Shown here: in pieces, positions 351-57,600 of the stretch
Numbering within the stretch: position 1 is the first letter of the stretch
How the letters are laid out: each line of letters opens with the position of its first letter
Assembly (NCBI GenBank): GCA_965644265.1
Contig: OZ286471.1
Span: forward strand, 46,934,001-46,998,000
Source: Glycera tridactyla
Lineage: Eukaryota
Length of the DNA: 64,000 nt
Reading direction: 5' to 3'
Position numbers and translations under genes: made by a program
The notes under the pieces: generated by a model
The model's database searches: none
What the model saw: only the letters and a program-made list of their open reading frames with translations
Told to the model about the DNA's origin: nothing

Positions 351-524
351 ATGGTTGCTATATACCTACAGTGGGTGGAACTGCCAATGGTGCTAGCTGT
401 GTCTTTCCATTTTTCTACGGAGGTGACAAATACTGGCAATGTACTGTCGTGAAGAACAACAATCAGGCATGGTGTTCTACAACTACCTTCTATGATGTTG
501 ACAAAAAATGGGGCAATTGTTTAG
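351..524 (+). CDS. FN2 exon, array unit 1
   Basis: 174 nt, ccag|...|gtaggc; DGCYIPTVGGTANGASCVFPFFYGGDKYWQCTVVKNNNQAWCSTTTFYDVDKKWGNCL. Confidence 0.9.
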
Positions 525-3500
525 GTAGGCAAGTTGGTAATAGACTGCTTGTTTTGTTGTGAACTCAACTTGTTTTCATGGATTTTCATTTCATACTGAT
601 TGTGCCATGAATATATTGAATTTGTGATGCACGTCAATCTTGACCTGAAGTTTGTGAGTTGATTCCGAAGATTCAGAGAGTATCTTCGAAGCAGTCCTGC
701 ATGGCACTGATAAGTAACTGAGATATCTGTAACCGGAACATTCTTACATCCGATTGTTGATTGTTACTCAATTCAACAGTGTGTGATTATGATATGTAGA
801 ATTTCGTTAAAGCAATTTACAACTGTCAAATTGAATTGCACATTCACCAATTGACTATTTCCTGCATACTGCCTGCTCTACATTTTCCTAGATCTCAAAT
901 GTGGCGAATCCACCCTTGTTGCATCAACATTAGTAACAGAGGCATCCTCATCGGCATCACCCAGGCCATCCATACTTCCCACACAGCAAGTCACTCTACC
1001 AGGTAATATACCTCTGGCAGCTATATCATGAAGTTTCTGGCCATTCTCTAAAGGCATTAGGTGATTTTATACGAATGCAAACCCATACTACATCTCTCAC
1101 AAAAAAGATTGCTTGTCGCTTCTGTAACTGCATGATCTGGAATTGCCATTTGGAGCCTGTTATCCAAAAATGCACTAGTTCATAAGTGATGGTTAATATC
1201 TCTGGAATGTCACTGAGGTGAATTGGTCACCAATAATGACCAATGTCTGTCTGTAATTGGTCGCATATTCTTCCCTCCTCTTCTAAACAGTATTTACTCA
1301 GCACTCCCTTTGATCTACAATATTTTGGAATTGGATACACTGTATCATCCAACATTATGTACTTCAATCTTGAGAAGCCATTTAGTATCTCCGCAATACT
1401 TCATGCTTCAAACAGACCGCTTTTTTGGATTAGTTGAAGAATATTGTCCAAAACATATGTAGTTCTCCCCTTTAGGAATTTCAGGCAATCAATTGCTCCT
1501 AACTCGCTCGATTTATCAGTTTCACTTTCTACAGAAAATACAACTCGCTCGATTTATCGGTTTCACTTTCTACAGAAAATACAACCATCACAGATTGCAT
1601 GGACTCCATTGCCATCTCCATGATATATTTCATGGGTTAAATCACTGCATTTTTCAGATGGTTGCTATATACCTACAGTGGGTGGAACTGCCAATGGTGC
1701 TAGCTGTGTCTTTCCATTTTTCTACGGAGGTGACAAATACTGGCAATGTACTGTCGTGAAGAACAACAACCGGGCATGGTGTTCTACAACTACCTTCTAT
1801 GATGTTGACAAAAGATGGGGCAATTGTTTAGGTAGGCAAGTTGGTAAAAGACTGCTAGGCTCGTTGTGAACTCAACTTGTTACTGTGAATTTTAATTTCA
1901 TGCTGAGTGTGCCATGAATGTATTGAGTTTGTGATGCACATATATCTGGACCTGAAGTTTGTGAGTTGATTCCGAACGTTCAGAGAGTATCTTTGAAGCA
2001 GTCCTGCATGGCACTGATGATTAACTGAGATAATGGAAATCGAAACATTCTCACATCCGATCGTTGATTGTTACTCGATTCAACAGTGTGTGATTATGAT
2101 ATGTAGAATCTCATTGAAGCAATTTGCAACTGTAAAATCGAATTGCACATTCACCAGTTGACCATTTCCTGCATACTGCATGCTCTACATTTTCCTAGAT
2201 CTCAAATGCAGCGAATCCACCCTTGTTGCATCAACATTAGTAACAGAGGCATCCTCATCGGCATCACCCAGGCCAACAATACTTCCAACACGGCAAGTCA
2301 CTCTACCAGGTAATATACCTCTGGCACCTATATCATGAAGTTTCTGGCCATTCTCACAAATGCATCAGGTGATAATATACGAACGCAAACCCATATTACA
2401 TCAGTCAAAAAACAGATTGTTCGCCTCTCCTGTGACTGCATGATCTGGAATTGCCATGTTGAGCCTGTTATCCAAAAATGCACTAGTTCATAAGTGAAGG
2501 CCAATGTCTCTCGAATGTCACTGAGGTGAATTGGTCACCAATGATGACCAATGTCTATGTGTAATTGGTCGCAGATTCTTCCCTCCTCTTCCAAACAGTA
2601 TTCACTCGGCACTCCCTTTGATCTACAACATTGTGGAATTGGATAAACTGTATCATCCAACATTATGCACTTCTATCTTGAAAAGCCATTTTGTATCTCC
2701 GCAATACTTCATGCTTCAAACAGACCGCTTTTTTGGATTGGTTAAAGAATATTGTCCAAAACATGTGTAGTTCTCCCTTCTCGGAATTTCAGGCAATCAA
2801 TAGCTCCTAACTCTCTCGATTTATCAGTTTCACTTTCTACAGAAAATACAACTTGCTCGATTTATCAGTTTCACTTTCTACAGAAAATACAACCATCACA
2901 GATTGCATGGACTCCATTGCCATCTCCATGATATATTTCATGGGTTAAATCACTGCATTTTTCAGATGGTTGCTATATACCTACAGTGGGTGGAACTGCC
3001 AATGGTGCTAGCTGTGTCTTTCCATTTTTCTATGGAGGTGACAAATACTGGCAATGTACTGTCGTGAAGAACAACAACCGGGCATGGTGTTCTACAACTA
3101 CCTTCTATGATGTTGACAAAAAGTGGGGCAATTGTTTAGGTAGGCAAGTTGGTAATAGACTGCTAGGTTCGTCGTGAACTCAACTTGTTACTGTGGATTC
3201 TAATTTCATGCTGAGTGTGCCATGAATATATTGAATTTGTGATGCACATATATCTGGACCTGAAGTTTGTGAGTTGATTCCGAAAGTTCAGAGAGTATCT
3301 TTGAAGCAGTCCTGCATGGCACTGATGATTAACTGAGATAATGGTAACCGAAACATTCTCACATCCGATCGTTGATTGTTACTCGATTCAACAGTGTGTG
3401 ATTATGATATGTAGAATCTCATTGAAGCAATTTGCAACTGTAAAATTGAATTGCACATTCACCAGTTGACCATTTCCTGCATACTGCATGCTCTACATTT

Positions 3501-15500: not shown

Positions 15501-18500
15501 TCAATCTTGAAAAGCCATTGAGATTCTTCGCAATACTTCATGCTTCAAACAGACCGCTTTTTTGGATTGGTTAAAGAATATTGTCCAAAACATATGTAGT
15601 TCTCCCCTTTAGGAATTTCAGGCAATCAATTGCTCCTAACTCGCTCGATTTATCAGTTTCACTTTCTACAGAAAATACAACCATCACAGATTGCATGGAC
15701 TCCATTGCCTTATCCATGATATATTTCATGGGTTTATTCACTGCATTTTCCAGATGGTTGCTATATACCTACAGTGGGTGGAACTGCCAATGGTGCTAGC
15801 TGTGTCTTTCCATTTTTCTACGGAGGTGACAAATACTGGCAATGTACTGTCGTGAAGAACAATAACCGGGCATGGTGTTCTACAACTACCTTCTATGATG
15901 TTGACAAAAAATGGGGCAATTGTTTAGGTAGGCAAGTTGGTAATAGTGTAATCCTTCCAATATGACAATGGAATTAAACCAGTCATCCGACAGGCTTGTA
16001 GGAGTATTCCCTCCTCTTCCTTAAGATGCAACCTTGGCAAGAAGCTTATATCTGATTAAATTACCATTATCAAGAACAGCAGGAAGCAATGTAAAGGTTA
16101 ACCGGGCTTTTACCCCATTTATCCCAATGTCAAAATAAATGGCATTGCTCCTGTGGATCGATGTTCACAAAAATATATACGTTGTACTAAAAGATGTTAA
16201 AATGCGCGATCAGTATCACATGTTGAATCCCATTGTTTGCCAGCTCTAATGAAACCATAATTCTATAAAGACATCTCTTTCATCACACAGGGAACTCAAT
16301 TGTTGGTTCAAAAGTATAAGATGACACATAAATAGAGTTGTAGATACATATTTTAATTTGTATAAGTTCACATAGTAGGTAGGTTGTAAATGATAGATCA
16401 TAAATTGAATGAAGCAAAATAGATTATCACGGTATCAATTAGACAAAAAGTCAGTTATACTCATGATGCAATAAATAAATTCATTTCAAACATTCAGATC
16501 TGAATCATATACATATATGACAAGTATGGATGAACTCGTGTTACATAAATACCAGTGATATATCAGAATTATTCAACTCACGACATACACATACACAGGA
16601 TATTCATGTCTAAATGACAAAGTGAGGTACCTCAATGAGTTATACAAGTACACACTCAAATAGTCACAAAATTGAGCTCAAACCCTTTTATAGTACTATC
16701 TTCTTTCTTGTTCCATCGTTGACTTGGGCGCTTGAGAAGTGGCCACTGCAGCTAGCTAGAAATATAAACAAAGTCAAAGACACTGTGTCTAGATAGTTAG
16801 TGCACTTTAGATATATGACTTTAAAAGTTTGGGTTAAAGACCCACGATGCAAGACCGACTTTAAAAGTTAATATAGTGGTGGCCACCTAGTTGCACATGT
16901 GATGACGAACTTTGGTTATATATCCATATCAGCTAGAGAATGATGGTAGCTGATACTAGAACGCGTATCATTGATGGAAGTAGAAGTAAAGAGGAGACAT
17001 CATTCCTCTCGAGTGAAGTAGCTTATCTCGTAAAGATAGCTAACAGCATCTCACCGTGTGAAGAGATTATGTCCTACACATCTCCCATGTGTATAGTGCG
17101 TTTAACACACTAAGGAATATGTAGATGACGGCTAGGCATATCCGCCTATATTAGTAGATTCCCATAAGCCTGGGAGGCGACGTGGGAATGGAGTGGCCTG
17201 AAGAGTACGCACCTCTTCGATTTTACGACATCTCAGACGCGCTGGTCGCTGCAAGAAGATAAAAAAAAGTCTCCTACCAACTTGTCCAAGTATCATAAAG
17301 AAAAGTTTTAATTCAAAAAGTATCTTTAAACAACTCTAAGTTTTATTTATGTTTGTTGCGTGCACTTAGTTACTTGCAGTTGCCAGATCTATTATAGTGG
17401 GAAGGCAGGATCCCACTCTATTCCCCACTAACTAAATAGCATAAGAATTTAACTTACAAGTTACCATTTATCGAGTTACTAGAAATATTTCAACATTCAG
17501 TTGAAGAGATTGTCAAAAGACAATCAGCAAGTATCACCGTTGAAAAGAAATCTCAATGCACTTAAGCCATTATCAACGGAGCAGGCACTGAGCCAACTAA
17601 GTTAACCAATCAATGAACAAGGCATTAAAATATCATCAGCTGTATCAGAGAGAGCTAAGTTCACGGGGAATGAACTAGAAAGGTGAAAACACCAAGTCCT
17701 CTCTCAGTCAGCTGGGATCATGATGCAGCAGCAATACAGCGAAAAAGTTGAAGTCCAACTGTCTGCATGAAAAGAGCAAGCACGCTTTTCAAAATCAAAA
17801 ATAGTTAAGTCCTCATCAAATCAAATTCAAAAATTTGAATAAATTCTAAGTTAAGAATCCAAGATAGAGAAATCAATCTATTCAGAACAGGTGGTCTTTG
17901 TAGACAGTATCAGATAAAGTCACCACTCACCGAAGCAAGAGGCAAGATCTGAAATCAACCCAAGTTCCCCCTCCCTTACACTGTGAGTATGACCTACCTA
18001 ACATAGACCGGAACGAACTAAGTCACAGCTGCAACAGCAGCGGGGTCTAAGTTCCGATCTACCAAGTCCGTGCTAAGTTCGAATTCTAAAATTCACCAAA
18101 TCCCAATTTCAACTCATTTCAAGCCATTTGGTAATGTCTAAAGTCGAAATTAGTCATGTAATTCCAGAAATATAAGAGCGAAATGCATTTACATGCAGTC
18201 CCATATGTCACAAACCTCAAACACAAATGTGCTTACTAGGTAAGACCATGAGTAAGTCCGGTAAGCATCGTGCTGAGTTTCAGTCAACGCGCTAAGTCCG
18301 CGCTGTCAAATCACAAATAGCGCTAAAGCCAGCACACTGAAGTTCTACAAAAGCAATCCGCACATAACGAGAAACAGTTCCGATCAATTCTAAAGCATCT
18401 AAAAGCTTTTATCCAAAAGTGATAAAGTTTCAAACTTGTTGAAAAGTGTAAAGTGGATCGGAGGCTCAAAGTGAGGCTCATACATGTGGCGGATGGAAAT

Positions 18501-21500
18501 CCAAAATGGCGGATTGTTTACATCTGACCGATCAGTCAGAAACAGCTGTTCATTCCAGATCGCTCAGAAAGTGTTCCGGAGCTCAAATGACAGCGCATTG
18601 CAGCTTATTCATTACGAGAGCAAAACAATTACAAATATAGCCGTTTGAAGGTCTAAAATCAATTCAAAAGAATTTTCCTTCGAAAATACAGCCCAACGTG
18701 ATGTCGCAGATCATATAGACCAAAAATCTCACGGTGGTCACATGTGACAGGTTGGTCTCAATACGGAGGTTCCCTCAAAAAAGTAGGTCACGGGACTTAG
18801 GGACATCACACAAGACTAAGCAAGCTTAGGACGGGTCCGTGCTTAGGATATACGGCGCTTAGGACAGAAATCAAGCTTATCAGAGTGGACCTCCTCTGAA
18901 AAAGTCTAAATTCAGGCCGGGCACATGAATCACAAGCAGGCACTACGTGTAAACAAAACAAGTCTCGGTTTGTCGTCTCCCCTACATGTCTATTACAAGT
19001 ACGAGCACCAAAAACATTTCACCGGATCTTCAATTGACAAATACGACAGTTGTGGTCATGGAAATTGAAATACCATCAAACTAGCACTTGATCGTTTATA
19101 AACAAGCTTGTTGCAAGCCGAAATAAATTCAGAATACTGAAATTGAAGCATATTTGATCGGTCGATTAATCGATTAATCGATCGGTTAACCGTCAAAGAA
19201 TTTCAGATTTTCACACCATATGAACGACGTTAGATTATTACCTTCTCAAAACAAGCCGTTTCAATGAAAATACGTTTTTCAATAAAGTATTTCACTCGGA
19301 AAAGAAAAGATTGACTGGATCTCTATTCATATGATCAGGGAAGCTAAAGAAAACAGATCAGCTGTGTGTGCTATTTACGAAACCAGCAGCAGAGTTCACC
19401 TCAGCGGTGACCTGGTTAGTACACATGACAGCGAGCTGCCATTGTCATACCGAGATAGGCATGTTCATTTCAACTCAGCCCACATGGACTGGTAGAGTAG
19501 CCGGGTCTAAAAACACACAGATTCAGAGAGAAAAGACACAGTCGTCTCTGCTGATATTTCAACTGAAAATGATCTTACAGAAATATTCCTTTCACAATAT
19601 TATTCCTATAGGGAAATCCCGTGAATATAATTGAATTTTGAATGATTCAATCATCTAATTCACACAGAAATCCGAAATATTACACAAATGATCAGAATCT
19701 GATCGGTAGGAGCTATATTGAGACGTGTTAGCAGTTCATACACACAGCTTCCCTCACCCGGAGGATTCAGTGAGTCCAAGCGTTAAATACTATATTACGA
19801 ATTCCTGCATAGCCCTGTTCCACCCAAACAGGCGTACTGCACCGGGAACAACGCAGGAGGAACACGGCATAGTTCCACGCAGTTCCACTTGTTCCAAAAT
19901 CACCGGAACAGCACAGGGAATTTACAGAAACAGATAGAACTACCAATATCCGCGAGAATTATCAGCTAGTTGTTTGGATCAGGACGGCATTTATGGAACA
20001 AAATCCTATCATCCAAAATGATCCAAAATCATCCAAAAACATGCAAATTCTAGATTTTGACCACGTATGCTCGAAAGATGGTACATTCAATACAAAACAC
20101 GGAAGATCCGATGACATGAAATGGCATGATACTAAAAATGGCCATTTGGGCAAATGGGGAAAATGACTCCTAATAAAGCCTCCTAAAAGGATCCTAAAAC
20201 ATTTCTAAATCTCATGAACACTTACTGGATGTAGTAGAGCTCAGGACGATATAGTGGAGTCCATAGTTTCTATTCCAGTGCAGCGATACTGGAGAAGCAA
20301 GATGTTCTCTGCTCCCGACTCCCTCAGCTCCGGTGCGTACTCTTCAGGACAGAATTTCCAAGTGCCAGAACTCCTGTCTGGAATACTTTTATGTATCCGT
20401 CCTGAAGAGCCAGCAAAGAGCGGGAAAAAAGAGCGGGAGAAGCGATGTCAAGCTCCCCGAGTCAGCTACCTCGAAAGTATTCGCTCGAGACTTTTCTAGA
20501 TCGATTACAGAAGATTTTCTGAGAAAACATGTACATTGCATGTACATTGCAGATCACTTTCCTCCTGCGCGACTCCGAGCTCCTCCTGCTCAGGGAGTCG
20601 TTCACTATACTGTGTGATCAACTATGTTGGCAAAAAACCATCCGATAAACGGCCTATCCCACGGACTAACAATTTTGCCTCAAAAGATACACTTCCCATC
20701 TTCGGGATATCTTCAGCCCTAATACAGATACGTATCGTGTTAAAATATGGTCCCCCTACGTCCATTATTCATGAAGATATCGCATTTCTACTGTTTCACC
20801 CTAGAAACACTGCAAGCTGGGCACCCACCGCGAACGGCGATTCCACTGCGTGTAACTCGAGCTCTAGTTGCCACACCAACAACCAGATAGGTGAAACAAC
20901 TAATATTAGAAAACTAACAAGATTGCCACTGTTTTTCAACTAATAGAAGTGAAACTATCTCATGCTTCTGGAGTAGGAAGGGATAAATATAATTCTAGTA
21001 GCGTTAAACTAGTGCCGCGGGCCTCAAAAGAGGAATTCCGCGAATTCCGCTACCAGAAATCCCTATATTGTTCATGTTATTCTAACAAACGTCACATGTT
21101 CAAAAACGTGGCGTTACAATAGACTGCTTGTTTTGTTGTGAACTCAACTTGTTACTGTGAATTTGAATTTCATGCTGAGTGTTCCATGAATATATTGAGT
21201 TTGTGATGCACATATATCTGGACCTGAAGTTTGTGAGTTGATTCCGAAAGTTCAGAGAGTATCTTTGAAGCAGTCCTGCATGGCACTGATAAGTAACTGA
21301 GATAATGGTAACCAAAACATTCTTACATCCGATCATTGATTGTTACTCAATGCAACAGTGTGTGGTTATGATATGTAGAATCTCATTGAAGCAATTTGCA
21401 ACTGTAAAATTGAATTGCACATTCACCAATTGACCATTTTCTGCATACTGCCTGCTCTACATTTTCCTAGATCTCAAATGCAGCGAATCCACCCTTGTTG

Positions 21501-30500: not shown

Positions 30501-33500
30501 TTTGCCCCTCCTGTGACTGCATGATCTGGAATTGCCATGTGGAGGCTGTTATCCAAAAATGCACTAGTTCATGAGTGATAGTCAATTTCTCTGGAATGTC
30601 ACTGAGGCGAATTGGTCACCAATGATGACCAATGTCTATCTGTAATTGGTCGCAGATTCTTCCCTCCTCTTCCAAACAGCATTTACTCAGCACTCCCTTT
30701 GATCTACAACATTGTGGAATTGGATAAACTGTATCATCCAACATTATGCACTTCAATCTTGAAAAGCCATTTTGTATCTCCGAAATACTTCATGCTTCAA
30801 ACAGACCGCTTTTTTGGATTGGTTAAAGAATATTGTCCAAAACATATGTAGTTCTCCCATCTTGGAATTTCAGGCAATCAATAGCTCCTAACCCGCTTGA
30901 TTCATCAGTTTAACTTTCTACAGAAAATACAACCATCACAGATTGCATGGACTCCATTGCCATCTCCATGATATATTTCATGGGTTCATTCACTGCATTT
31001 TTCAGATGGTTGCTATATACCTACAGTGGGTGGAACTGCCAATGGTGCTAGCTGTGTCTTTCCATTTTTCTACGGAGGTGACAAATACTGGCAATGTACT
31101 GTCGTGAAGAACAACAACCGGGCATGGTGTTCTACAACTACCTTCTATGATGTTGACAAAAAATGGGGCAATTGTTTAGGTAGGCAAGTTGGTAATAGAC
31201 TGCTAGGTTCGTTGTGAACTCAACTTGTTACTGTGGATTCTAATTTCATGCTGAGTGTGCCATGAATATATTGAGTTTGTGATGCACATATATCTGGACC
31301 TGAAGTTTGTGAGTTGATTCCGAAAGTTCAGAGAGTATCTTTGAAGCAGTCCTGCATGGCACTGATAAGTAACTGAGATAATGGTAACCGAAACATTCTT
31401 ACATCCGATCATTGATTGTTACTCAATTCAACAGTGTGTGGTTATGATATGTAGAATCTCATTGAAGCAATTTGCAACTGTAAAATTGGATCGCACATTC
31501 ATCAATTGACCATTTTCTGCATACTGCCTGCTCTACATTTTCCTAGATCTCAAATGCAGCGAATCCACCCTTGTTGCATCAACATTAGTAACAGAGGCAT
31601 CCTCATCGGCATCCCCCAGGCCAACCATACTTCCAACACAGCAAGTCACTCTACCAGGTAATATACCTCTGGCACCTATATCATGAAGTTTCTGGCCATT
31701 CTCACAAATGCATCAGTTGATAATATACAAATGCAAACCCATATTACATCAGTCAAAAAAAAGATTGTTTGCTGCTCCTATGACTGCATGATCTTGAATT
31801 GCCGTGTGGTTACATAATACCGTCCTTTTCATATGTAGTTCATATGTAGTTCATAAATGGCATGCACATGTAAGCAGGGCAGGCAGATTTTCCAGAGGGG
31901 CATTTGGATTTCCATGATGTCTTCTCGCCCTGGTGAGGTGATGAATTTTAGGGCTAGCTCTCTCAAACTTTGTGTTCCCACTCTCTTGGGCCATGGATTC
32001 ACGGCTGTCGAATGGTTTCCAGACAATAAATTTGTGAGTTTCAGCGCTAGCCTTCTCAATCTTGGTGTACAGCCTTTTATAGACTATGCCAACACACCCA
32101 TTGATTTTTCAGTGGCTATCTTCAATTTCAAGGTCACTGAATGCAAAAAGGTCAAAAGAGTTTCTTGACAATCACCTCATAAATTACAGAGGTGGCTTTC
32201 GCAAACTTGGTGTACAGACATTCCCAGGCTATTGCTAGATTTTGGGGTTGCCATCTCAACTTTCAAGGTCATTGAGTGTGAACATGTATTACTTTTGTTC
32301 ATATATTTCACTTTTCTCATTTACTCTTCCTGTGACAAGCAAACACTCAGCACGGGGCAATCACACCCATTGAGTGCATCCACAGGCTAGTGGTGATACA
32401 CCAGCATTTTGATGACAGTGCCAAAAGGTCAAAAGTCAAGGTCACAGGAGCTATTTTCAGAATTTAATATTTTTCACTATAATTTGACTAAACATCAATC
32501 AGTATGTAGAAATCTCACTTGGTGAATTTTTCTAGTTTCCTAGGTCACCATGACCTGATCAAAGGCTTCCCTTGTCAGCAAGATTCCAGTCAAACTGCTG
32601 ACCCAAATTCAACTGAACGTCTCTGATGCTTGGGCATATTCTCGAGGACAAGTCCTACCCTAGGAGACCCCCCCCCCCCCCGGATCACAGTACACCTCAT
32701 ACCCCAGGACACATTGTCATACTTATGATTAGGTATTCTACATCATTGGTCACTCAAAGGATAATCGGCAACCAATAATGTCTAGTTCATCAGTGAGCAT
32801 GCTCACTCGAAGATGAATAAACAAGCAGGTGGGAAGCCAGACAGGCATGCAGGTAGTAAATAATAACACATCTGGGGGAGACATATTGAGTGAGGAGGTG
32901 CCTCACTAAAATTCTAGTTGCATACTTCATTGCCATTTCCGATATATATTCTTGATGGGTTCATCTATGCATTTCCAGATGGTTGTTATATACCTACAGT
33001 GGGCGGAAATGCCGATGGTGCTCGCTGTGTCTTCCCATTCTTTTACCGCGGTGACAAATACTGGCAATGTACTGTCATAAAGAACGACAACAAGGCATGG
33101 TGTTCTACAACTAGCTTCTATGATGTTGACAAACGATGGGGCAATTGTTTAGGTAGGCAAGATAATGATAAACTGCTTATCACTTTGTGAATTCAATTGG
33201 TTGAAATTAATTTTCATCTCATATTGAATGCCTGAAGAATTGAATGGAAAGCCATTACTACCTGACGTTCATGGGATGATATTGAATATTGAGAGAATCT
33301 GGAATGAACAACTTAAACCAATCTGCCTTAGATCATGAATTTTCATCCAATGATAATAAATGCACATCATGAGATTATTGGCAGATTGTTTTGAATGTAT
33401 TGTGCATGCTACTTTATAGCTGGGTGAGAACTACTTTTTGACCATTCCGTCCCTAATCCACGTGATTAAAGCAAGAATATATGGCCGTGAGGTAAAATGC

Positions 33501-36500
33501 AATACCAAACTAAATTCGCTATGCTGGCGAAATTGACACCTTGTTCGGTATTGCGTTTTTACTTCACGGACATATATTCTTACTAAAGTATTCTGTTTTT
33601 ATCAATCAGAGCTCCTCTGCAGCGCATCTTTATTCATGTGATTCTGTAATCCCTGTGTGTTGCATTCATTTGAGGTATTTGAGTTAGCTTTGTTTAGAAA
33701 AGGTGCGCTTCAGGGAATGCTTAGTTCCATAGATTCTTGTTCTTGAACTAACAAATTATATTTCATCACCAATAGATCAGTTATGCAGCACAACGGTATC
33801 CACGACCCTCGGCATCAGCAGCTCAGCGGCACCCATTGTATGTTACATACCAACTACTGGCGGCAATGGTAATGGTATGCAGTGCGTGATCCCCTTCATA
33901 TACAATGGGAATGTGTTCACTTCATGCACAGCTGTCCGGAATAATGGCATACCTTGGTGTTCTATCACTGCAAATTATGATGAAGATAAACTTTGGGGAA
34001 TCTGTTTAGGTAAGTCTTCTCGGGGCGATTTCCTGTGAGGAACTATTATTTGATATTCTGCAGATGACTCAAATCAGGAGACATTATTTGCTATTGGGAA
34101 ACATGGAGTTAAGGATGCTGCTATACCAAGGAATTTGACAAGAAAATCACATGGATATGACGATTGTTCAGTCGTCCTAGTATTTCCTTATCGATGTAAT
34201 TGTAACTCTGGCTTGTTCTGGATTGGGATGAATTATCACATCTCGGAGGTGGGAAGTTAGATATGGTTTTCATGACAAACACATAAGATGTACTGCTTAA
34301 CATACCAGCAATGTTACATCGACCAAACTATGCCAAGCTCAATGCTCGACCAAAATGGTTGATCATTTCAGTAGGTCTGGAAACTGATGTTAATAAATTG
34401 GGATCAGTTTGCATGTATTCGGTTCATTTTGTGTGAGATTCATATCCATTAATATGCGAGATGAATTTTGTTGTAAATGTTCACATTGGCCGCCAGTTAG
34501 TAGATGTTTGGACTAGATGATTTGGTGGTAAACAGAACAACACATATTCTTGGAAGACAATACAGATATATGAGGTTCCACCATCTACTATGACCACAAT
34601 GCTGATGAAGATCTTCTATCGTAGATATAAATACTTCCATATTGATCCGACCAACTTGTATAATTCTGTTCACTTGGGGATATGTTTACTCTTACATTTC
34701 CATAAGATATCCTAACCAGAGCTCCACACTCAACTCGTCTGTATTACAGCTATGGATAACCACCTGGAAATATCATATTCAAGCAGATATTTCATATAAT
34801 AATTTTATTAGATAAGATTTGAAGTCACATTTTCGGTGCATGAAATCACAATTCACTCCAATCCATACGTTCTTATTGTTCAAGATGTTATATGTGATGA
34901 ATCAACCAGCGGTCCTTCAACATCCCCGTCGATCAGTAGTCCATCAACTACTCCAGTGCTGACAGCACTGCCAACACAGGCACCCAGCACTCTTCCAGGT
35001 ACATNNNNNNNNNNNNNNNNNNNNNNNNNNNNNNNNNNNNNNNNNNNNNNNNNNNNNNNNNNNNNNNNNNNNNNNNNNNNNNNNNNNNNNNNNNNNNNNN
35101 NNNNNNNNNNNNNNNNNNNNNNNNNNNNNNNNNNNNNNNNNNNNNNNNNNNNNNNNNNNNNNNNNNNNNNNNNNNNNNNNNNNNNNNNNNNNNNNACCCA
35201 CGCCCCATCGTCCCGGACAAGTGCATGCACCCTGTCGGGCAAGTTCCTGTCTTTACAGCTTGTCCTAAGGGCAAGCATGTAAACAAGGTGTATTTAGGGT
35301 GAGCTGGCAGGTGGGGCCATCTCATGACTCCAGCAAACTAAATTGGACTATGATTGGTAGAGAGAGAGCACAATATATGCCAATTCGATATGTAGGTATA
35401 ATAAAATGTGGTGTATTAGGGCTCAAACTAGATGATCACTTTGTAATCATTCACCCCTTGATATCTGGGCAGGTGCATGTGAGATTCGGGCAAGTACCTC
35501 TTGGGTCTACTTGCCCTATGGGCAAGTACTCATTCTCACTTTCGTCGACCACTGGATAGATAAGGCTCACGTACAATAATAATACTCCTGCATAAGCAGA
35601 TATTACTCATATCCTATGACAATGTCAATAGCAAGGATAGCAGACTTAGTCTATTCGTTGGTGTGCATTAATTGGTCTGTCTTCGAAATCCTTCCATTCC
35701 CTTGTATCTTTACCAGGTAATTCGTGTTTTGTGTGGTAATTCCTTCTGAAATACCAATTATATAATTGATATCATGTAATGCATGATTAGTGTGGGGGTC
35801 CCAGGGGGCTTTGCCCTCCCCTGATTAGGATGAAATCTTAGAATGAGGAGTGGTTGGAAGGATTCTAAATTCCCATACCAATGAGGTAGGTTGGACTCTG
35901 AGAACTCCTGATTCTCTTCCATAGATGGATGTTACATACCAACATTCGGAGGAAATGCGAAAGGAAATTCTTGTGCATTCCCATTCTTCTATAAAGGTAA
36001 CAAATATTGGGAATGCATAACCATCGACAACGGAAATGCACCTTGGTGTTCGACAACAACGTTTTATGATGTCGACAAACGCTGGGGAAACTGCTTAGGT
36101 AAAGCAACATCACTTCCATGTCCAGATCGACAAAATGGTTATTCACATCGATAAAAATCACTGATGATATGTTATTCCACACTGTAGAGAGTACCCTTCT
36201 TCAACTAGAGATAACATTCAAATATCTAAGCTTGTGTCGTTTTATCTATGAAAGGAAATATACAACCATTCAGTATTGTATGCTATCTGTATGGTATGAC
36301 TTTTAAAGAATGTCGCAATTGAGAAGGGATTCGTTTGATGACTAAGAAATCCCAAGCATGTACAGATGGAATGGCAATCATGTCACTACATTCATGGTAA
36401 TGTCTCAATCTCCACTGTGCATATTTCTTAGATATCATCTGTGATGGAACAACAATTGTTCAATCTACGTTTGTGACTGGTGCTGGAACAACTACATCAG

Positions 36501-45600: not shown

Positions 45601-48600
45601 GCAGGGAACATTTGAAATGCTGCAACGAATTCTTTCAATTTTCTCTCCACATCGATGATATATAAGTAGGCAGGTTACGAGCAAGCGATTTGAGTGTTTC
45701 GACCCGATCAGTTTAGGTAGATGAGAGAGGTGCTGGTGAACATTGCCAGGAAAGGACTCCAAAATCGAATGTTCTTCAAAATACTATAGCAAGACTATGT
45801 GGCCGTGAAGTGAAAACGCAATACCAAACAAGGTGTGAATTTCACCGGATGCCTGATGAAATTCAAACCGAGTTTTGTATTGCATTTTTACCTCATGGTC
45901 ATACTGCCTTGCTTTTATCACATGGATTCGGGGGGAGAAATCGTCGAAAAGTTGTTCTCACCCAGCTGTTAAGTATCACATGCAATACTCAACATCTGAT
46001 ATTTGTGATAACAGCCTACACATGCATGTAATAACAGCCTATACATCCTCTGGGTTGAATGGTATTGGTTGAACCGTGACCCCTTTTTTGCAGAGGGTTG
46101 TGTCATCCCCACATCTGGTGGAACAGCTGATGGGGCAGCTTGTGTGTTTCCTTTCTACTATGATGGCAAAAAATACTGGGAGTGTACTCCAGTGAAGAAC
46201 GACAATGTGCCCTGGTGTTCAACAACAACATTTTACAATATCGACAAACGATGGGGGAATTGTTTGGGTATGAGATATTTTAGTACATTTCTTAAGCCAG
46301 ACGCTTCGTAAATATTGCAATTAATTATTCTATGAAATAGATGGTCAATCGCACATGGGATATCAATATGTATGTTTACATGTATGTATTAATGTATGTG
46401 TGCGTGTATATGCGTGCGTGCATGCATGCATACATACATGAATGTCTACATGAATTTGTGTAATAATATAGACAATGGATAGCATTTCTCTTGAATAGAT
46501 AGTTTAGAAAAACGAGCTATCATCATTCAGGAAACATCTATCACATGAAAGTGTCATCTTGATACCTCAGAACCAGCTTCATGAGAAAATATTCAAGGAA
46601 AACAGATGTAATATTCACTGATGAATGTTCTCAGTCATCAAGTCGTATTTCAATATGAAAAAATGAATCAGGAAACTGGACTCACGTTACAGCTCGAAGA
46701 GTTTACAGTCTGTAGAAAGCTAGAGGTTCAAGCCGCAATCGCATTCGTTGTGAGTCCAGTTTCTTGATTCATTTCTTCTTTGTAATATGCTTCACGTACT
46801 TCGAGATGTAAAATAGGTAAAGTAGCATGTGGAATAAACTCGTCGGAAAGACCTGGGAAATATATTTATCAGTTCATCCTGATTATTGCCGAGGAGTGGA
46901 ACATCTCAGTTCAGTGGGTCCCGACACGAATGACATAAGCCTCATTTTCCTGCAGATCTGGTATGTGGGGAAGATACTACGGCCCCCTCCACTCCATCCA
47001 CCGTGCCTTCAACTCAGACCAGCAGTGGTCCAGCTGGCACCGAGACATTCCTGCCACCGAATTGCATTATTCCAACATCAGGAGGAACAGGGATGGGTCA
47101 AAACTGCGTTTTTCCTTTCATCTACCGAAATCGTGAATTCACTGCATGCACCACGATCAGACATGATAGGGCGTGGTGTGCTGTCACATGGGACTATGAC
47201 CAAGATGAACTCTGGGGAAATTGTTTAGGTATGACTAATATATCTGGTGACATATTTGTGCGACGGTGTGCGAGGGTGACTATGTGTATGCAGGTGTTAA
47301 GGAGACTGACAAAATTTGTCGCTCTCTCTGATCAGAATAGTAGTATATTGGAGAAGAATGTTTTGGTACTCAGAGTAAACTCAACTATAGAGAGCTTTCA
47401 GGGCACATCAATACTGTTTCGTCAGCTTCGTAGCGATTGTGGCATTGCTGTTGTCTGATCACGTGACCTTATGTCATTGGTTGGTTGGTTCTGGTTTAAC
47501 GTCATGTCAGCCCCATCTGGGCTATATTATGACGCCCTTTCAATGGGCATGGGAGAGATCTGGGTCCCAAACGGAAGGTGGACATTTATGAAATTCACAG
47601 ACACTCAAGGTGCCATTTTTGTCAATGCGTGCACCAAAGGCGAAATGCAGTATATGGGACAATCACCATCTGACCGAATTTGTCTAAGGTTTGGAAAATT
47701 TGACTCAGTCTTATTCATGTAAGGTCAGTTGTAAACCATCCATATGAATTGCTACATATATCCTATCATACTGGCTAAGTCTAAACTTTCTTGCCCATCA
47801 TACAGATCTGGTGTGTGATACTTCCACAACCTCGGCAGGTACAATGATCCCAACAGCGACGGCAAAATCCGTGTCCTCGACAAACCTGCCAGGTAAGGAG
47901 TGGTTGTTCGTGACGTTTACATGAGATGACGATACATTTCAGCAATACTTGATACTCACAGATCAAACAATGAATAACTTCTATTTGTCATAATTGCAGT
48001 ATGACGAGTTACATTGATTTCTTTCCCATGTTAGCTGCATACCGTATGTTGTGGGCTATAATGTGAAACACTGGTAAGGGAAGATCATGAAATCCAATAG
48101 AACAATAACGATGATTCTGAATGCATCAGCGGTTGGTTGGTTCTGGTTTAAAGTCACGTCAGCACCATCTGGGCTATAAGGTGATGCCCGTGCAATGGAC
48201 ATGGGAGGGATCTTCCGACCCCTCCCTCTGGGTCCCCAACGGAAGGTGAGATGATATGAAAATCACACAAGGTGCCATTTCATCAGCGGCAAATATAGTG
48301 ACCGGATTCATGTGAAATGTTGAATCATGCATTCGCAAACCCTTTCTCACGTATACTTTCCAGATGGTTGCTTCATCACAACAGCAGGGGGAACAGCTGG
48401 TGGTGCCTTCTGTACCTTGCCTTTCTTCTATAATGGTGTGAGCTACAGCCAGTGTATAACATTCATTCGTGGGAGGCCATGGTGTGCTACGACAGTTTTC
48501 TTTGAGTTTGATCAGCTCTGGGGCTACTGTGAAGGTATGAAATCTTGGGAGTGTTCATCTCACTATATTCTGTCCAATATTGCTCATGTAATATGGCATG

Positions 48601-51600
48601 TGCATATTTCATGCAACAAATATCTCAATTAAATGATTTCTTCCTGGCAAATGGAAAACATGAGGGTCTCCAGGACATGACAGATTGATCAGCTTGGCGA
48701 TTAGGTCATACGTCATGGCCACCACATTGTCACATTATTGACATAATGTGTGTCAGACTGATTGCATATCTGTGAATATTTATCACAACAATGAATAAAA
48801 TTGTGTATGTGGGTCATGGACACATATATGTGGCTTTTCAAAGAATTTCCAAATGGAAAGGTATCTGTGACAAAATGAGCCAGACATAAGTCTCACAAAT
48901 CCAAATGGGACAGTTAAGTCTCAGACGCTCAAGTCATCATTCCTTAAAAGATTCGAGATTCAGTAGCATGAATGAATTGTATATGTCTTCATGCGATCAT
49001 CGAACCTGATTCCAGATAGTCTGTGTGCTTTTGAAAAGGATATGCTCTCTGTTTAGTGCATCTATACAACAACACTGCCAGCGTGATATTGTCTGACATT
49101 TTGTGTTCAAAGTCATGGAGATACAGCCACCATACACACCATGAATCTAGTGAGAGATTGACATATTTGTTGCGCTGTGGTCGTATATACAATTGAACTT
49201 CATTGTGGCCGCCGTTCAAGTCACCAGCGATGTCAATCCCATGCAAATTCACAGTACTAAAGTGGGAATATACCCGTACTGTCAGGACTTCAGCGGATGT
49301 CGAGAACGTTGCTGATCAATACAATGAGCTACAGATGAACATATAATTGTCTAAAATATTATGTAGAACACCAGTCTTCCGGATTCAAACTAAAATCATG
49401 CAATTTTAGTCAGATGCCAATGTATGCTTCCTCATTATCATTATTCACTGATCAAGAAGGAATATTTTCCAAGGCTGCAAATGTCATATTTTATTCAGAT
49501 CGTGTTTGCCCCTCGTCTACATCTGCTGCACCATCTCCGACTACTCCGTCACCATTCCTGAATGTTCCACCTGGTTGTCAGGTTCGAACAACAGGTGGTA
49601 ATGCTAACGGGGACTATTGCTATTTCCCATTTGTCTACAAATCTGACCGCTATGATTCATGTACCATGAGAAACCATGACCAGTACTGGTGCTCAGTGAC
49701 ACAGTTCTACTCTGTGGGGAGTCGTTGGGGGAATTGTTTAGGTAAGTTGTACGTCGGTATATGGTTAGAGTTATGGTTTCTCCACTCACGATCATACACA
49801 GAATGACATGGTCGTCAGTTGGTTAGGTGGATTGTCCATCATTGGTGGTGCATCTTTTGATGACTATCAACATCCTATGTCGTGCCCGGATTACTTTATT
49901 GTCAACCTCAATGAGATCTTATGAATGACTCTATTTCCACATTGATGATTATAAAGTTGATTCAAAAAAATTTCAGAACATAAAGTCGTCGTAGTTCTGT
50001 CATTTGCAATCGATTGTTTAGCAAAACCATCAAGACAACATCTAGAACATCTCCCTAATGCTCTGCTTCCATGATGTGGATGTTTGATCCGATATATGAT
50101 TCTTTCTGATTTGATATAACCCAATGAAATAGCTCCTAATTTTCCTATCAATTAAATGATGCAGATGTTATTATTGTATGAAAGCAGATATGAATTTGTT
50201 ACGACCATTGGCTTCATAGGGATATTATGTTTGTCTTGAAATAGAAGTGGTATGTGAAAGTGAGACCACAGAAGAAATTGTATCAACCACAACTCAAGCC
50301 AGGCCAACTCCTACAACGACCACTACACGCCAACCATATACACAAGGGAACTGCTACATACGTACGACAGGTGGACGTGCCGGAGATTCACAGTGCTACT
50401 TCCCTTATGTTTACAAGAGTGTTACATACTATGAATGTACAGTGGTGGATAATAATGGCATTCCATGGTGCTACACAACCAGCGATTACAAGAATGATCA
50501 CCTGTGGGGCAATTGTCTAGGTTAGTGGTCTTCACTTGCTTCACCAAAAGGACATACATATAATTTGTATCATACTTGTGTCTCAGAAATATGTTACTGT
50601 CAGCAGCATTTGAAAAGTCTTCATCAGATTGCAAGTACTTTAGTCCCAAAGATGTAACTTTTCTGATATCTATTGCATACGAAATATAAACTACAATATA
50701 GATATTAAGTATGATTTCATGTCAGTTTTTCAGTAATGAATACTTGTTGCATGCATGACTGAATACTAACATGATCATATTTCAAGTATATATGGCATTG
50801 TCAAGTGCATTTCTGCTTGTGAATGTGATCTTAGTCATCCAATTCCTATCTCACTCCATTCCACAGATCAAGTTTGCAGTACCTCGTCATCTTTACCCGA
50901 AGTCACATCTATCCAAGCAACAACCATACCAGGTAGCTCTTTTTAGAACAAGACATGAATAGACAGACAGTCAGGCCAATAAACAGACAGACAGACAGAC
51001 AGACATACATTTGCATGGTTTGAAGGATAATTTGATGGATGAATGAATGGATTGGTGTGAAAAATGAAGCAGGAAGAGATAGGAGGATCGTAGATGAATG
51101 GGTAGATGGAGAGATGTATGATTCCAGGTTAGGAACTTGGGGAGGGGGGGGGGGGGGGTCACTTAGGATGGCGATCACTCTCAACAACACCTGGTACTCC
51201 CAGATCAAGAGTAGGTAGACGTGTGTCTGAACTGTCAGATCACAGATCAAGCGATAAATGACATTTTGCGCAGCCACCCATATTCTAATTGTCTGTCACA
51301 CTCGGAATTGCAGTATGATGAGTTACAGTGATATCTGGCCAATTTTCATTGAATAGTTATGCAAAGAGCTATACTGTAAAAGATTTTAGAGGGGAGATAG
51401 CGAGATCCAATAAGACAACAACAATGATTCACAATGCAACAGCAGAAAATATAGTTACAGGGCTCATGTGAAATGTCCAATCATGCATTCGCAAACCCAT
51501 TCTCACATATACATTCCAGATGGTTGCTTCATCACATCATCAGGCGGAACAGCTGGTGGTGCTTTCTGTACCTTTCCTTTCTTCTATAATGGTGTGAGCT

Positions 51601-54600
51601 ACAGCCAGTGTATAACATTCATTCGTGGGAGGCCATGGTGTGCTACGACAGTTTTCTTTGAGTTTGATCAGCTCTGGGGCTACTGTGAAGGTATGAAATC
51701 TTGGGTATGCTCATCTCACTATATTCTGTCCAATATTGCTCATGTAATATGGCATGTGCATATTTCATGCCATCAAATATCTCAATCAAAGGATTCTTTT
51801 CTTGGAGATGAAATACCTCTGGCAACTGAACACCAATCTTTTTGTTGATGGTCTCTGTGCCTGGACATGACAGATTGATCAGCTTGGCAATCAAGTCACA
51901 TGTCATGGGCACAACATTGTCACGTCATTGACATAATGTGGATCAGACTGAATGTATTTCCGTCAATATTTGTCACAGCGACGAATATAGTTTGGTATGT
52001 AACTCTTGGACACACATATATATGCCTTTTCACAGAATTTGCGAGTTCATCGAAAGAGTTGTGTGTCAATGAATTGAACGAATTGTATAGATTTTTCACG
52101 GTAATCTTCAAACCTGATTTTGAATAGTCTACCTTCTTCCAAAGATGATTTGCTCTTATAGGGGTGCATTTATATGACAAAACTGCCCGATTTGTATCAT
52201 CTGAATTTTCATATTTTAAGTGATGGCCACCATACTCGCCATGAAACCGGTGTGAAATTGACATATTTATTCTGCTGTGTTGAAATATACAATTCAACTT
52301 CATTGTGGCCACAGTTTGAGTCACCAGAGATGTCAATCCCATGCATATTTGTAAGGTTAGAGTGAAAAATGTACTCATAATGTCGGGACTCAGTCAACGT
52401 TGAAGACGTTGCTGATTTATATGATGATCTACAGAAGAACACATAATTGTCTTGATTGTTGTGTACAACTCCAGTCTTCCTGGTTCAACCTATGATCATA
52501 CAATTTCAGCCAGATGCCAGTGTATGCTATTTCATTCGTGATATTCACTGATCAAGTAGCAATGTTTTCCAAGGCTGCCAATGTCATAGTATTTATATTT
52601 CATTCAGATCGTGTTTGCCCCTCGTCTACATCTGCTGCACCATCTCCGACTACTCCGTCACCATTCCTGAATGTCCCACCTGGTTGTCAGGTTCGAACAA
52701 CAGGTGGTAATGCTAATGGGGACTATTGCTACTTCCCTTTTGTCTACAAATCTGACCGCTATGATTCATGTACCATGAGAAACCATGACCAGTACTGGTG
52801 CTCAGTGACACAGTTCTACTCTGTGGGAAGTCGTTGGGGAAATTGCTTAGGTAAGTTGTGCATCAAAATGATCAGAGTGATGGTTTCTCCTCTTACTGAT
52901 CATACGGTTTGTTTGTTTAATTGTTTGTTTGAGTTTAACGTCAGGGGATGGCATGGTTGTCAGTTGGCTGGGTGGGTGGTCTGTTGATGGTTCATATTTC
53001 AATAATTATCAACATCTTATGTCATGCCCAAATCACTTTATTGTCAATCTCACTGAGCGAAACCTCAAACATATTCCTACTGAAGATTGATATTGATAGT
53101 CATCGTAGTTGTTGTTTGCAGTTAGTTGTTTAGCAGAACCACCTCAAAATATCAAGTCAACAGCTAGAATATCTCTCTAATGCACTGCTTCCATGATGTT
53201 GTTCATTGGTTTGATATCTGATACATTTTGCTTTGACATGCCGGATAAAATAGCATTCAATATTTGTATCAATCAAATCATGCAAATTTCATTCTAAAAT
53301 GAAAGTAAATATGAATATAATATTACCACTGGCTACATAAGGATGTCATGCTTGCCTTGATATAGAAGTTGTATGCGAAAGTGAGACCACCAAACAAACT
53401 GTATCAACCACAACCCGAGCCAGGCCAACTCCTACAACGACCACTACACGCCAACCATATACACAAGGGAACTGCTACATACGTACGACAGGTGGACGTG
53501 CCGGGGATTCACAATGCTACTTCCCTTTTGTATACAAGAGTGTTACATACTATGAATGTACAGTGGTGGATAATAATGGCATTCCATGGTGCTACACGAC
53601 CAGCGATTACAAGAATGATCACCTGTGGGGCAATTGTCTAGGTTAGTGGTCTTCACTTCTCTAATCAAAAGGACATACATACGATTTGTATCACACCTGT
53701 CAGCAGCATATCGATATTGCAAAGTCTTCAGTCATAAAGATGTAACATTTCTGATCTCTGTCATATATTATCTATCGACTACCATATTCATCAGATATGA
53801 TTCCATGTCATTTTGCCAGTGGAGAATACGCGTTGCATGTATTACTGAATACTAACTCAAGTTTTGTTTTTGACACTAATTAGTGCTCATATTTCAAGTA
53901 TATATGGCATTACCACATGCATTTCTACTTGTGAATATGATATGTACCAGGGTCATTTCAATTCGATCCCACTCCATTCCACAGATCAAGTTTGCAGTAC
54001 GTCATCATCTGTATCTGAAGTCACATCCATCCACGCTACAAGTATACCAGGTACTCATTATTTTGTCGAAGGCATAGACTCCAAATCGTCTATAGCTTCA
54101 GCACCAGTGCACTGGACAATTTCGCTGTTCCACCATTTTCCAATAATATGCCAACGACTAGTCTGTGAATATAATACCTGCTTCATCTGTTGAGAGAGAC
54201 GAACAGACAGACAGATAGGCAGACAAACAGACAGACAGACAAACAGACAGACAGATATAGACAGGCAGCAGCCAGGCAGATAGACAGAAATATGCATGGT
54301 TGAGAGCATGGATAGTTGAATTTATCGATGAAAAGGAGCATTGGATGAAAGAAAAGAGCAGAACCACCCAATGAACCACAAGAATAGACAGATTGACAAA
54401 CAGAAAAAAACATTTATTGAGATACTTATGTGTCTCAGATATTAACAGGCACACATTGTGGTGTTGCTGACTAATAATCTACACATGAACTTCCATATTG
54501 ATGGAATGTATCCTACAATATGCCGGTTCATGACAACCATCAAACGCGTTTACAGATGGGTGCTATATTCGGACTTTTGGCGGAACATCGAATGGGGGTC

Positions 54601-57600
54601 GTTGCTTTATCCCATTCTTCTATGATGGAAAATTTCATGAGCAGTGTATCTCATTGGATCGCAGACAACCATGGTGTTCTACAACAGCATTTTTCGATAT
54701 AGATCAGCTGTGGGGATATTGTCTAGGTAATGTATACATTCCGTGAATATTTGCCTACAGATTACTTTCCCCAGAGCAACATTTTCGTCACAGCCATGTA
54801 TTGAGATTCCTCATCACCAGATGATAACATGCCTCCATGATACGTACCATTTCTGTCGACTAGACTTGCTGTCATTCTTCACAATTTTGTGATTCTACAC
54901 TTTTGTGCAACATTTGATACTGAGCAAAGGGACCACTTGCAAATACCTGAATTACGTCATTGGAGATGATGCTGAAAATATGGAGAAAATCGGATCAGCA
55001 TTTTCTAGCTATCTGGGTTATGTGCAATCGCTCTGAGTACGGAAATAGAGCATACCTAAACTGATTGACACTGATATGTCTCCTCATGTATATAACTTTT
55101 TTCTCAGATCGAGTGTGCCCAGCCCCAACAACGCCAGCATTACCAACAACCACAGAACCAGCTTTTCTCAATGTTCCATCGGGATGCTTCGTTAGAACAA
55201 CTGGTGGTACAGCAAATGGCGACTATTGCCAGTTCCCCTTCACCTACAAATCACAACGCTATGATACATGCACGAAGAAAAATCATGATCGGTATTGGTG
55301 CTCAGTTGTACGGATTTATTCCATTGGCCAACGATGGGGAAATTGCCTAGGTATCAATTGATTGATTATTCCCGATTTCGATGCACGTACATAGGGAAAC
55401 GTAAATGTGGCCACATAGTCAATAATCATATTGGCCATTTATTCTGAACATGTAACTGCTATTGTATCATCATGCTTTGGACTGAACTGGCCATTGAATC
55501 ATTGTGACTAAGGGGAGTCAGTATTTGTTGATTATTTCTTCTTCTACAAACACAATTCATGGGAGAAAGAGGGAGATAGAGAAAGAGTGAGAGAAAGAGT
55601 GAGAGAGAGATAGAGAGATGACTAAAGATGTATAATCGAAGGATGCAGTATCAAGAGTGGAGTATCTTCTGTGAACTTCTGATTTCTCGTTGTATTTATT
55701 TATAGATCTATGTTTGCGCCATACATATTCTGTATGTTTAAGGCAATAGATGAACATGACTTTCCTATGATCGGCCACTCTACCATGAATATATCTCAAT
55801 TCCGGCATTTCCTTCGTGAGATACCTAAATGAGATATTGTGTTTTATTGTGACAGATGTTGTTTGCGAAACTACAGAAAAGACAACAACTACAAAACGTC
55901 CAACTACCACACCCACAACCACGACTGAACCCTACACACAAGGAGATTGTTCTATCTCTACGTTTGGTGGAACCGCTGGTAACTCACAGTGCTCGCTTCC
56001 ATTTGAGTACAAGGGTGTGACTTATTATGACTGCACGACGCGAGATAATGATGGCGTGCGATGGTGCTACACAACTGCTAACTACAGAAATGATCATTTA
56101 TGGGCAAATTGCTTAGGTGTGTCATTATATAGACTCAGCACTACCATTCGTGTTATCTTGCCCCCCCCCCCCCCCTTCATGAATTAATCAAAAGACTTTC
56201 TCCCTCTATTCAGAAAATTATAAACCATTCGATACAATTCACCAATCATGATATAAATGGATGCACACTAATCGGTACTGAAAGTGTACCCGAGTATTTT
56301 TATCACCCGCATGAAGACAGTGATTGCAAGTACGCATGAGACATTCATACTGAGATCAAACATCGAGAAATTCATGTCAGTGTGTATTCATTCAATGAAA
56401 TGGTTATTTCGCTCAATTCACCGAAGTCATGACTCGGATCTTCCCTATCTGTGGAACATGGCCGGGAATTTCTATGAAGTCAGCCCACTACAAAACTTAT
56501 GCGATGCATCTCTATCGACTCGTTATGCTTTTTGCAATCAATGTTTGTATTATGGCTCATGAGAACGTGTTGCAGGATTCATTTGTGTGCGTCTCCCAGT
56601 GTTTTGTCAGATATGTCACAGTCATCACTGTATGTTCGAATACCTGTCTATTTTAATTGGCCACTCGAGAAAAAGAAGTTTCAGAGTAGGCAATTTGTGA
56701 GGCCTATCTCAAATCACATCAGTAGAAATCGATTGGTTTTTCTATCCTGTCAAGGAATGCCAACTGAACCAAATTTAGTCCATTCGTAGATTTATTTAAT
56801 TTCCATTTTGATCTCATGAACTGTTTATGTTCACCTGGTGATGGACATGTGTCATATATATATCGCGGAAATCTTAACTACTCAACAATTTAGCTGATTA
56901 GATGTCAATCCGAGATGTGGACCCATCATCAATGAGAAATGACATTTTATCTGAATGACAGCTTGTAATCTGATTTCGTCAGATTGGCGTCAGTGTTCGT
57001 ACTATACATACTACGGGAGATTGGTGGTTTATTGCCAATTACTANNNNNNNNNNNNNNNNNNNNNNNNNNNNNNNNNNNNNNNNNNNNNNNNNNNNNNNN
57101 NNNNNNNNNNNNNNNNNNNNNNNNNNNNNNNNNNNNNNNNNNNNNNNNNNNNNNNNNNNNNNNNNNNNNNNNNNNNNNNNNNNNNNNNNGAGTAAAACAT
57201 TTGACCCATCATGGCACAGTGTAAGGGGAATATGTGAAGCACTCAGATTTGATCACATGTTTATCAATTTTCTTGTCATTGCATGCTGCATGAGTGGTCT
57301 GTCTTGCCAACTTATGTATGTCTTAGAACGATCTATTTCATTAAACTCCTCACACTTTGCCTGCTTGGAAAAACCTGAAGCTCATCCTCATCAGGTCCAA
57401 ATGCCTGAGTCATTCAAAGATACTTACCCTTCACCAATTTCTACTCAGCGAATGTTATTCCCAAGTTTCTCATATGCACCATGACTTTATATTAACATGA
57501 AAACACATGGCGAATGTTATTACCAGGTTTCTCATATGCATCATGACTCATTTTACCAACAGATGTAGTTTGTTCCACCTCGTCGACTGCACCGGCAACT

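Follow-up and report, generated by a model that had tools for sequence, protein, structure and literature searches.

Six-cysteine fibronectin type II modules with a likely disulfide clasp split by an intron in a very large mucin-like gene of Glycera tridactyla

A 64,000-nt stretch of the Glycera tridactyla genome (GenBank assembly GCA_965644265.1, contig OZ286471.1, positions 46,934,001 to 46,998,000 of the forward strand; the whole stretch is called the window below) contained 47 intact fibronectin type II (FN2) modules on the + strand. A six-frame scan recovered 46 of these, and one more was found in an exon at 55856-56116. On the strength of sequence and predicted structure, the window probably covers an inner portion of a very large transcribed gene for a mucin-like, beads-on-a-string FN2 protein in which each bead is closed by a clasp within the module. 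Each bead would be a genuine FN2 domain with the usual disulfides between its four core cysteines (C1-C3 and C2-C4), and two outer Cys would bond to each other, tying the two ends of the domain together. A conserved phase-1 intron one residue past C4 places the closing Cys at the start of the next exon. Because the closing Cys sits on the next exon, exon and folding unit would be out of register by four residues. The protein is predicted to be secreted and to carry O-glycans on its spacers. The clasp would be expected to raise the resistance of each bead to unfolding and proteolysis, and to carry tensile load from spacer to spacer through a disulfide instead of through the fold.

All 47 modules had the four core Cys at FN2 spacing, together with the aromatic cluster of the domain (FPF, Y, WC, W-G-x-C). 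An extra Cys, here termed the opening Cys, was located exactly 13 residues ahead of C1 in 47 of 47 modules, where it began the motif C-[YF]-[IV]-x-T-x-G-G-x-x-x-G-x-x-C. A phase-1 splice donor stood directly after C4-(L/E)-G, again in all 47 modules. The exon that followed opened with D/E/G-x-x-C, giving a second extra Cys, the closing Cys, at C4-x4-C spacing in 46 of 46 checkable modules; the exon after the last module falls outside the window, and the closing Cys was hence scored in 46 modules. Each of these 46 exons was preceded by a polypyrimidine tract and AG. The triplets before the closing Cys varied: DLK, DLQ, DQL, GPI, DER, EVV, DRV, DVV, DII, DVI, DLV, and GLV. The extra Cys were thus positioned 14 positions before C1 and 5 positions after C4. 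The first-pass annotation of this DNA had reported an extra N-terminal Cys in every module and an invariant spacing to a [DEG]-x-x-C start of the next exon in 46 modules, and these counts bear out both claims. When 22 distinct modules with identities of 44-98% were aligned, the opening Cys was invariant, like the four core Cys; the invariant columns were C16, P19, Y22, C30, W40, C41, W53, G54, and C56. The span from the first to the sixth Cys was 61-62 residues in most modules, and 13 residues lay between the second and third Cys.

The interval 351-1002, to which the first-pass annotation had been attached, proved to be exactly one repeat unit on the + strand: an FN2 exon (351-524), an intron (525-891), and a linker exon (892-1002). 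The FN2 exon comprised 174 nt and was phase 1 at both ends, with its acceptor AG at 349-350, its donor GT at 525-526, and its opening Cys codon at 356-358. Read with the final base of the exon before it, this exon encoded D-G-C-YIPTVGGTANGAS-C-VFPFFYGGDKYWQ-C-TVVKNNNQAW-C-STTTFYDVDKKWGN-C-L plus one base. The phase-1 intron at 525-891 (GT..AG; homologous junction 31179|31547) parts core C4 from the closing Cys. The linker exon was 111 nt long, began with (G)AT CTC AAA TGT (D-L-K-C; closing Cys codon at 900-902), and ended in phase 1. After D-L-K-C it encoded a 33-residue Ser/Thr/Pro-rich, Cys-free, mucin-like spacer. Exactly two Cys were present in every linker of the window, and the spacers proper were free of Cys. 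The spacers were 18-50 residues long with a mean Ser/Thr/Pro content of 57%, and are presumably O-glycosylated.

The array unit is spliced from FN2 exon to linker exon to next FN2 exon, as had been assumed at first pass, because contigs of four public runs (X1-X4, presumed to be RNA) show both junctions. The junction from FN2 exon to linker exon (31179|31547, GT..AG) was present in contigs of runs X2 and X3, and that from linker exon to next FN2 exon (31657 to 31006) in contigs of runs X1-X4. As mapped, the contig joints ran from 31176 to 31544 (cut +3, GT..AG) and from 31654 to 31003 (back 652). The contigs mapped onto unit 21 of the array (31006-31657, + strand; exons 31006-31179 and 31547-31657); by homology, the junctions correspond to 524|892 and 1002|1658 in the first unit. 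A metagenome contig from a related species (L001) encoded an FN2 that was 75% identical, with the same acceptor and the same donor, and the upstream linker exon on this contig opened with D-V-V-C, followed by a Ser/Thr-rich stretch. A word-index protein search with the 57-aa FN2 exon had a sole match, P0153, a genomic read-through call on a metagenome contig that is without the sixth Cys. A 90-aa fused exon had no match in the same kind of search, and neither query retrieved a spliced product of the gene from the protein collection.

Relatives of the modules were sought with a profile of 22 modules against 1.84 billion representative proteins, which gave 5579 matches at E ≤ 0.001; the best 150 were analyzed. 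Among the linkers between neighboring FN2 cores in the best 150 of the 5579 matches, 282 contained no Cys, 172 contained two, and 22 contained one. Mostly two-Cys linkers were found in 38 of these proteins and mostly zero-Cys linkers in 65. Expressed as the number of residues ahead of C1 and behind C4, the extra Cys stood at different distances in different lineages. The copepods Lepeophtheirus salmonis and Caligus rogercresseyi both had (7,3). Of two sponges, Corticium candelabrum had (8,1) and Oscarella lobularis had (7,7). The protein P0002 had both (11,7) and (15,7), the protein P0130 had (12,3), and a (6,4) spacing occurred in very long proteins. Across lineages the distance ranged from 6 to 16 residues on the N side and from 1 to 8 residues on the C side, and the (13,4) spacing of the window was rare among the best 150 of the 5579 matches.

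The invertebrate six-Cys arrays, known solely from database entries, resembled the window in having one extra Cys on each side of a core, two Cys per linker, and often Ser/Thr-rich spacers (P0002, P0037, P0085). They differed in that their spacings were other than that of the window, most had 3-13 modules, P0002 was intron-less, and none showed a clasp split by an intron. P0002 (L002:3001-7659) is a 1552-aa protein encoded by an intron-less 4.6-kb open reading frame (ORF) on a 1.09-Mb metagenome contig. It contained 13 or more FN2 modules with Ser/Thr-rich spacers; its first module had four Cys and most of the others had six, at (11,7) or (15,7).

Judged by these sequences, six-Cys FN2 is a widespread invertebrate subtype that occurs in copepods, homoscleromorph sponges, and other eukaryotes. 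The first-pass annotation had considered that six-Cys FN2 might already be a described, common subtype. It turned out to be common in the databases (38 of the best 150 matches), and full-text literature searches found no description of it. Automatic names such as "MMP9," "epididymal sperm-binding protein 1-like," and "fibronectin-like" show that the subtype has gone unremarked. A preprint on the salmon-louse genome describes a large expansion of FNII, with 192 such domains spread over 74 genes, and makes no mention of their cysteines; the same preprint argues for an FN2/kringle split in an early metazoan.

The two extra Cys of a module most likely bond to each other, in a disulfide topologically equivalent to the kringle 1-6 bond. 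This pairing is favored because of the Cys retained in terminal modules of relatives, the C-x-C linkers of P0130, the predicted structure of P0002, and the stalk-like spacers of the window. In arrays with two-Cys linkers, a Cys on the N flank was present in 36 of 40 first modules, and a Cys on the C flank in 36 of 41 last modules; in zero-Cys arrays the last module had a C-flank Cys in 10 of 65 cases. Several relatives terminated 0-2 residues past the C-flank Cys (…NANC, …RSNC, …GDSC, …NC, …KSC), which argues that this Cys belongs to the preceding module. These terminal modules bear directly on a different arrangement, in which the closing Cys of module n would bond to the opening Cys of module n+1, turning the spacers into disulfide-closed loops and stapling the beads end to end. 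The parity of zero or two Cys per linker fits such a bond equally well, and the window shows neither the first nor the last module of the gene. In relatives, however, first modules keep the N-terminal and last modules the C-terminal extra Cys, so that bonds across linkers would leave unpaired Cys.

Further evidence on this point came from P0130, where a single residue separated a closing Cys from the opening Cys that followed (C-V-C, C-I-C). A bond between two Cys so close is disfavored, as it would have to be a strained vicinal bond. An AlphaFold model was available as a proxy for a clean six-Cys module of the intron-less ORF (P0002:372-443), with a mean predicted local distance difference test (pLDDT) score of 87.8. 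Sixty-three residues had a pLDDT of at least 70, and the counts and block means fit an ordered chain from the extra Cys at residue 5 to the extra Cys at residue 67. Isolated beta-bridge residues were located at 8 and 65; if these pair with each other, residues 5/6 would lie next to 67. The model thus appears ordered between both extra Cys of one module, which also speaks against bonds across linkers. In the window itself, the spacers resemble extended mucin stalks rather than loops. Taken with the terminal modules and the P0130 linkers, this makes the end-to-end stapling of beads quite improbable.

The extra Cys could also serve as interchain bonds or free thiols that cross-link the giant protein into a gel or cement, as in the Cys-rich ends of gel-forming mucins. 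The mucin-like character of the protein, with its Ser/Thr/Pro spacers, would suit this role, and the nearly one hundred extra Cys in the window would cross-link densely. Against it stand the fixed positions of the extra Cys at both domain borders, their strict pairing per module, the same pattern in small proteins of 3-6 modules, and the ordered termini in the P0002 model, all of which leave cross-linking a very improbable explanation.

Several points weigh against an intramodule clasp within one large transcribed gene. The linker parity alone fits bonds within a module and bonds across a linker alike and cannot separate the two. Both ends of the gene lie outside the window, and the comparison of terminal modules was made in relatives. 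The structural evidence comes solely from relatives spaced (12,3) and (15,7), not from the (13,4) spacing of the window, and the per-residue pLDDT of the P0002 model was derived from block means and counts. The proxy model of P0130, with stray neighboring Cys, had weak termini (pLDDT 62 and 51). That runs X1-X4 are RNA is a guess, and reads from these runs barely cover the diverged modules in the second half of the window.

As for the core of the module, both sequence and models indicate that it is a genuine FN2 that has gained or kept an outer bond and not an FN2/kringle intermediate, because the Pfam result, the PDB matches, the loop lengths, and the fold of the proxy models are all those of FN2. 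Four different window modules matched fn2 alone in Pfam (43.7-57.6 bits against a cut-off of 22.2; profile positions 1-42 of 42; E 1e-11 to 1e-15), and in the same scan the kringle hidden Markov model had no match at E ≤ 1. For the module at 351-524, fn2 gave E 9.6e-15 over C1 to C4, and the FN2 matches in the PDB included MMP2 (2e-30); for the module in a fused exon at 46956-47228, fn2 gave E 1.2e-15. The outer Cys go unnoticed in such scans because the Pfam fn2 model covers only C1 to C4. Sequence matches in the PDB were to MMP-2/9, fibronectin, PDC-109, the mannose-receptor family, and factor XII, with no kringle among them, and the kringle signature was absent from all 150 relatives scanned. 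The alignment with MMP-9 started at the first residue of the exon and placed a Val at the position of the extra Cys; the lead-in is therefore ordinary FN2 sequence.

The predicted structures agreed with this assignment. A Foldseek search with the first proxy model (P0130) and VIA-align comparisons with both proxies retrieved FN2 structures (template modeling scores of 0.6-0.74; Z 5-9.5), and the models superposed on 1j7m and 2fn2 at root-mean-square deviations of 1.6-2.0 Å. The sole non-FN2 fold was prothrombin kringle 2 (Z 2.3-2.4), matched by one proxy model; the other model matched nothing else at Z ≥ 2. Feature and shape searches of the ESM Atlas returned only generic FN2 clusters, mostly chordate.

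Compared with vertebrate FN2 (PF00040), the window modules share the core C-x13-C-x9/10-C-x14-C with FPF, Y, WC, and WG-x-C, and the N-terminal lead-in P-T-x-G-G-N-x-x-G. Vertebrate FN2 has four Cys and two disulfides, whereas the window modules have six Cys, the sixth on the next exon. Mucin-like spacers also part the window modules from one another, and no described FN2 protein is known to approach their number of repeats. In Endo180 the FN2 disulfides are 187-213 and 201-228, and FN2 is regarded as a two-disulfide module (PMC4635314; PMC6211748).

The likeness to kringles (PF00051) is of a different kind. FN2 and kringle belong to one "kringle-like" superfamily, and the presumed bonds 1-6, 2-4, and 3-5 and the C-x4-C end match between the window module and the kringle. 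Kringles are triple-loop domains that have six Cys bonded 1-6, 2-4, and 3-5, a C-x4-C end, and a long loop of roughly 28 residues from Cys 2 to Cys 3. The window module, in contrast, is about 60 rather than about 80 residues long, with 13 rather than roughly 28 residues in that loop. The likeness of the closing C-x4-C to the kringle end is probably coincidental, because the distance from C4 to the closing Cys ranges from 1 to 8 residues among relatives.

The first-pass annotation had read the modules as FN2 cores clamped by a bond between the first and last Cys, and also as a possible kringle/FN2 intermediate. The clamp is likely in view of linker parity, the terminal modules, and the proxy model, while the intermediate is not supported, given the matches to fn2 only, the missing kringle match in Pfam, and the FN2 loop lengths. 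A comparison with known folds had been proposed along with that reading. When made with models of relatives, it returned FN2 structures at Z 5-9.5 and a kringle at Z 2.3-2.4 or not at all, contrary to an intermediate fold. In its strongest form, the module would be a surviving intermediate that keeps the ancestral kringle 1-6 bond and C-x4-C end. The C4-x4-C spacing and C-Y start do mimic kringle ends, six-Cys FN2 reaches as deep as homoscleromorph sponges, the module tree is compatible with a single six-Cys origin, and a kringle was the only non-FN2 fold matched (Z 2.3-2.4). The core, however, has the sequence, loop lengths, and predicted fold of an ordinary FN2, and x4 is one of many distances in a set where the extra Cys lie 6-16 residues away on the N side and 1-8 on the C side, depending on lineage. 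The tree of 41 columns did not resolve the matter, and a surviving intermediate is on balance improbable.

This tree was built from 122 FN2 cores. The best tree required 10 changes between the four- and six-Cys states, and the well-supported branches force one. One origin and several were not told apart because 41 alignment columns are too few for the purpose. An origin of FN2 from kringles has been proposed (Ozhogina et al., 2001, as cited in PMC6211748 and bioRxiv 10.1101/2021.03.15.435234). A speculative and rather unlikely extension is that FN2 had the outer clasp from the start, having received it from an ancestor common with kringles, and that the window modules keep a kringle-like state that predates exon shuffling. 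The phase-1 intron after C4 would then explain the four-Cys FN2 of vertebrates: a mobile 174-nt exon would bring the opening Cys without the closing Cys, and the unpaired Cys would subsequently be lost.

Each of the three FN2 exons in a vertebrate gelatinase gene likewise measures 174 bp, and such a match would imply conserved exon borders between phyla. The separate FN2 exon of the array units was 174 nt long and phase 1 at both ends, as for mobile extracellular modules, which are flanked by phase-1 introns (PMC8001218).

The six-Cys feature is not unique to the window locus, and the disulfide chemistry assigned to it here is a prediction. FN2 is taught as a two-disulfide module of roughly 40-60 residues and was long considered vertebrate-specific. 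The window gene and the copepod, sponge, and other proteins suggest that an FN2 with three disulfides, closed at its ends, is common outside vertebrates. Six-Cys FN2 offers a testable handle on the relationship between kringle and FN2, and the window gene would be a clear case of mismatch between exon and folding unit, in which splicing alone completes the clasp. It may also show how very long extracellular bead proteins can be designed, with a terminal clasp that would protect each bead against force and proteases. The CysD domains of gel-forming mucins are small disulfide-rich beads along the O-glycosylated Pro/Thr/Ser-rich regions of giant secreted proteins. Their bead-on-stalk arrangement is alike and their fold is unrelated, so the resemblance is a functional analogy only.

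The first 21 units formed a homogenized array at 351-31657 on the + strand, each unit consisting of an FN2 exon, an intron, a linker exon, and a second intron, with periods of 1266/1308 nt. The units were 93-99.5% identical, introns included, a homogenization that points to recent unequal crossing-over or gene conversion. The two unit lengths, 1266 and 1308 nt, recurred in partly alternating order within the array. About 5.4 kb of foreign DNA (15953-21349) lay in the FN2-to-linker intron of array unit 13, where it replaced some 220 nt of the normal 367-nt intron. AT skew was positive in this insert, unlike in the array. The insert contained no ORF longer than 135 aa and had no direct or inverted terminal repeats.

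The remaining 26 six-Cys FN2 modules (22-46 and the additional module at 55856-56116) were diverged and occupied 32979-63330 on the + strand. This region mixed separate FN2 and linker exons with exons in which linker and FN2 were fused, and the phase-1 intron after C4-L-G was kept in all. One fused exon, at 46956-47228 (+ strand), encoded D-L-V-C with the closing Cys of module 31, a 32-residue Ser/Thr/Pro linker, and the core of module 32 up to C4-L-G. The 47th module was likewise encoded by a fused exon (55856-56116, + strand); it was intact, its core ended in WANC, and its extra Cys stood 13 residues before C1. The closing exon of this module (DVVC...) started at 57563, past a run of N at 57045-57189, and a poly-C tract (56160-56176) was found just past its donor. 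Three-module duplications were observed twice: modules 33-35 resembled modules 36-38 (48364-53641), and modules 41-43 resembled modules 44-46 (58069-63330), with identical or nearly identical FN2 peptides.

Interspersed repeats in introns at 31859-32954 and 33366-33639 had a summed contig depth of hundreds to about 37,000 in runs X1-X4, with many variant copies. The repeats at 31.9-33.6 kb matched no credible Rfam family or tRNA; one sub-threshold match to mir-142 was probably due to chance. A (TA)n-like microsatellite was located at about 39600, in the intron after module 26.

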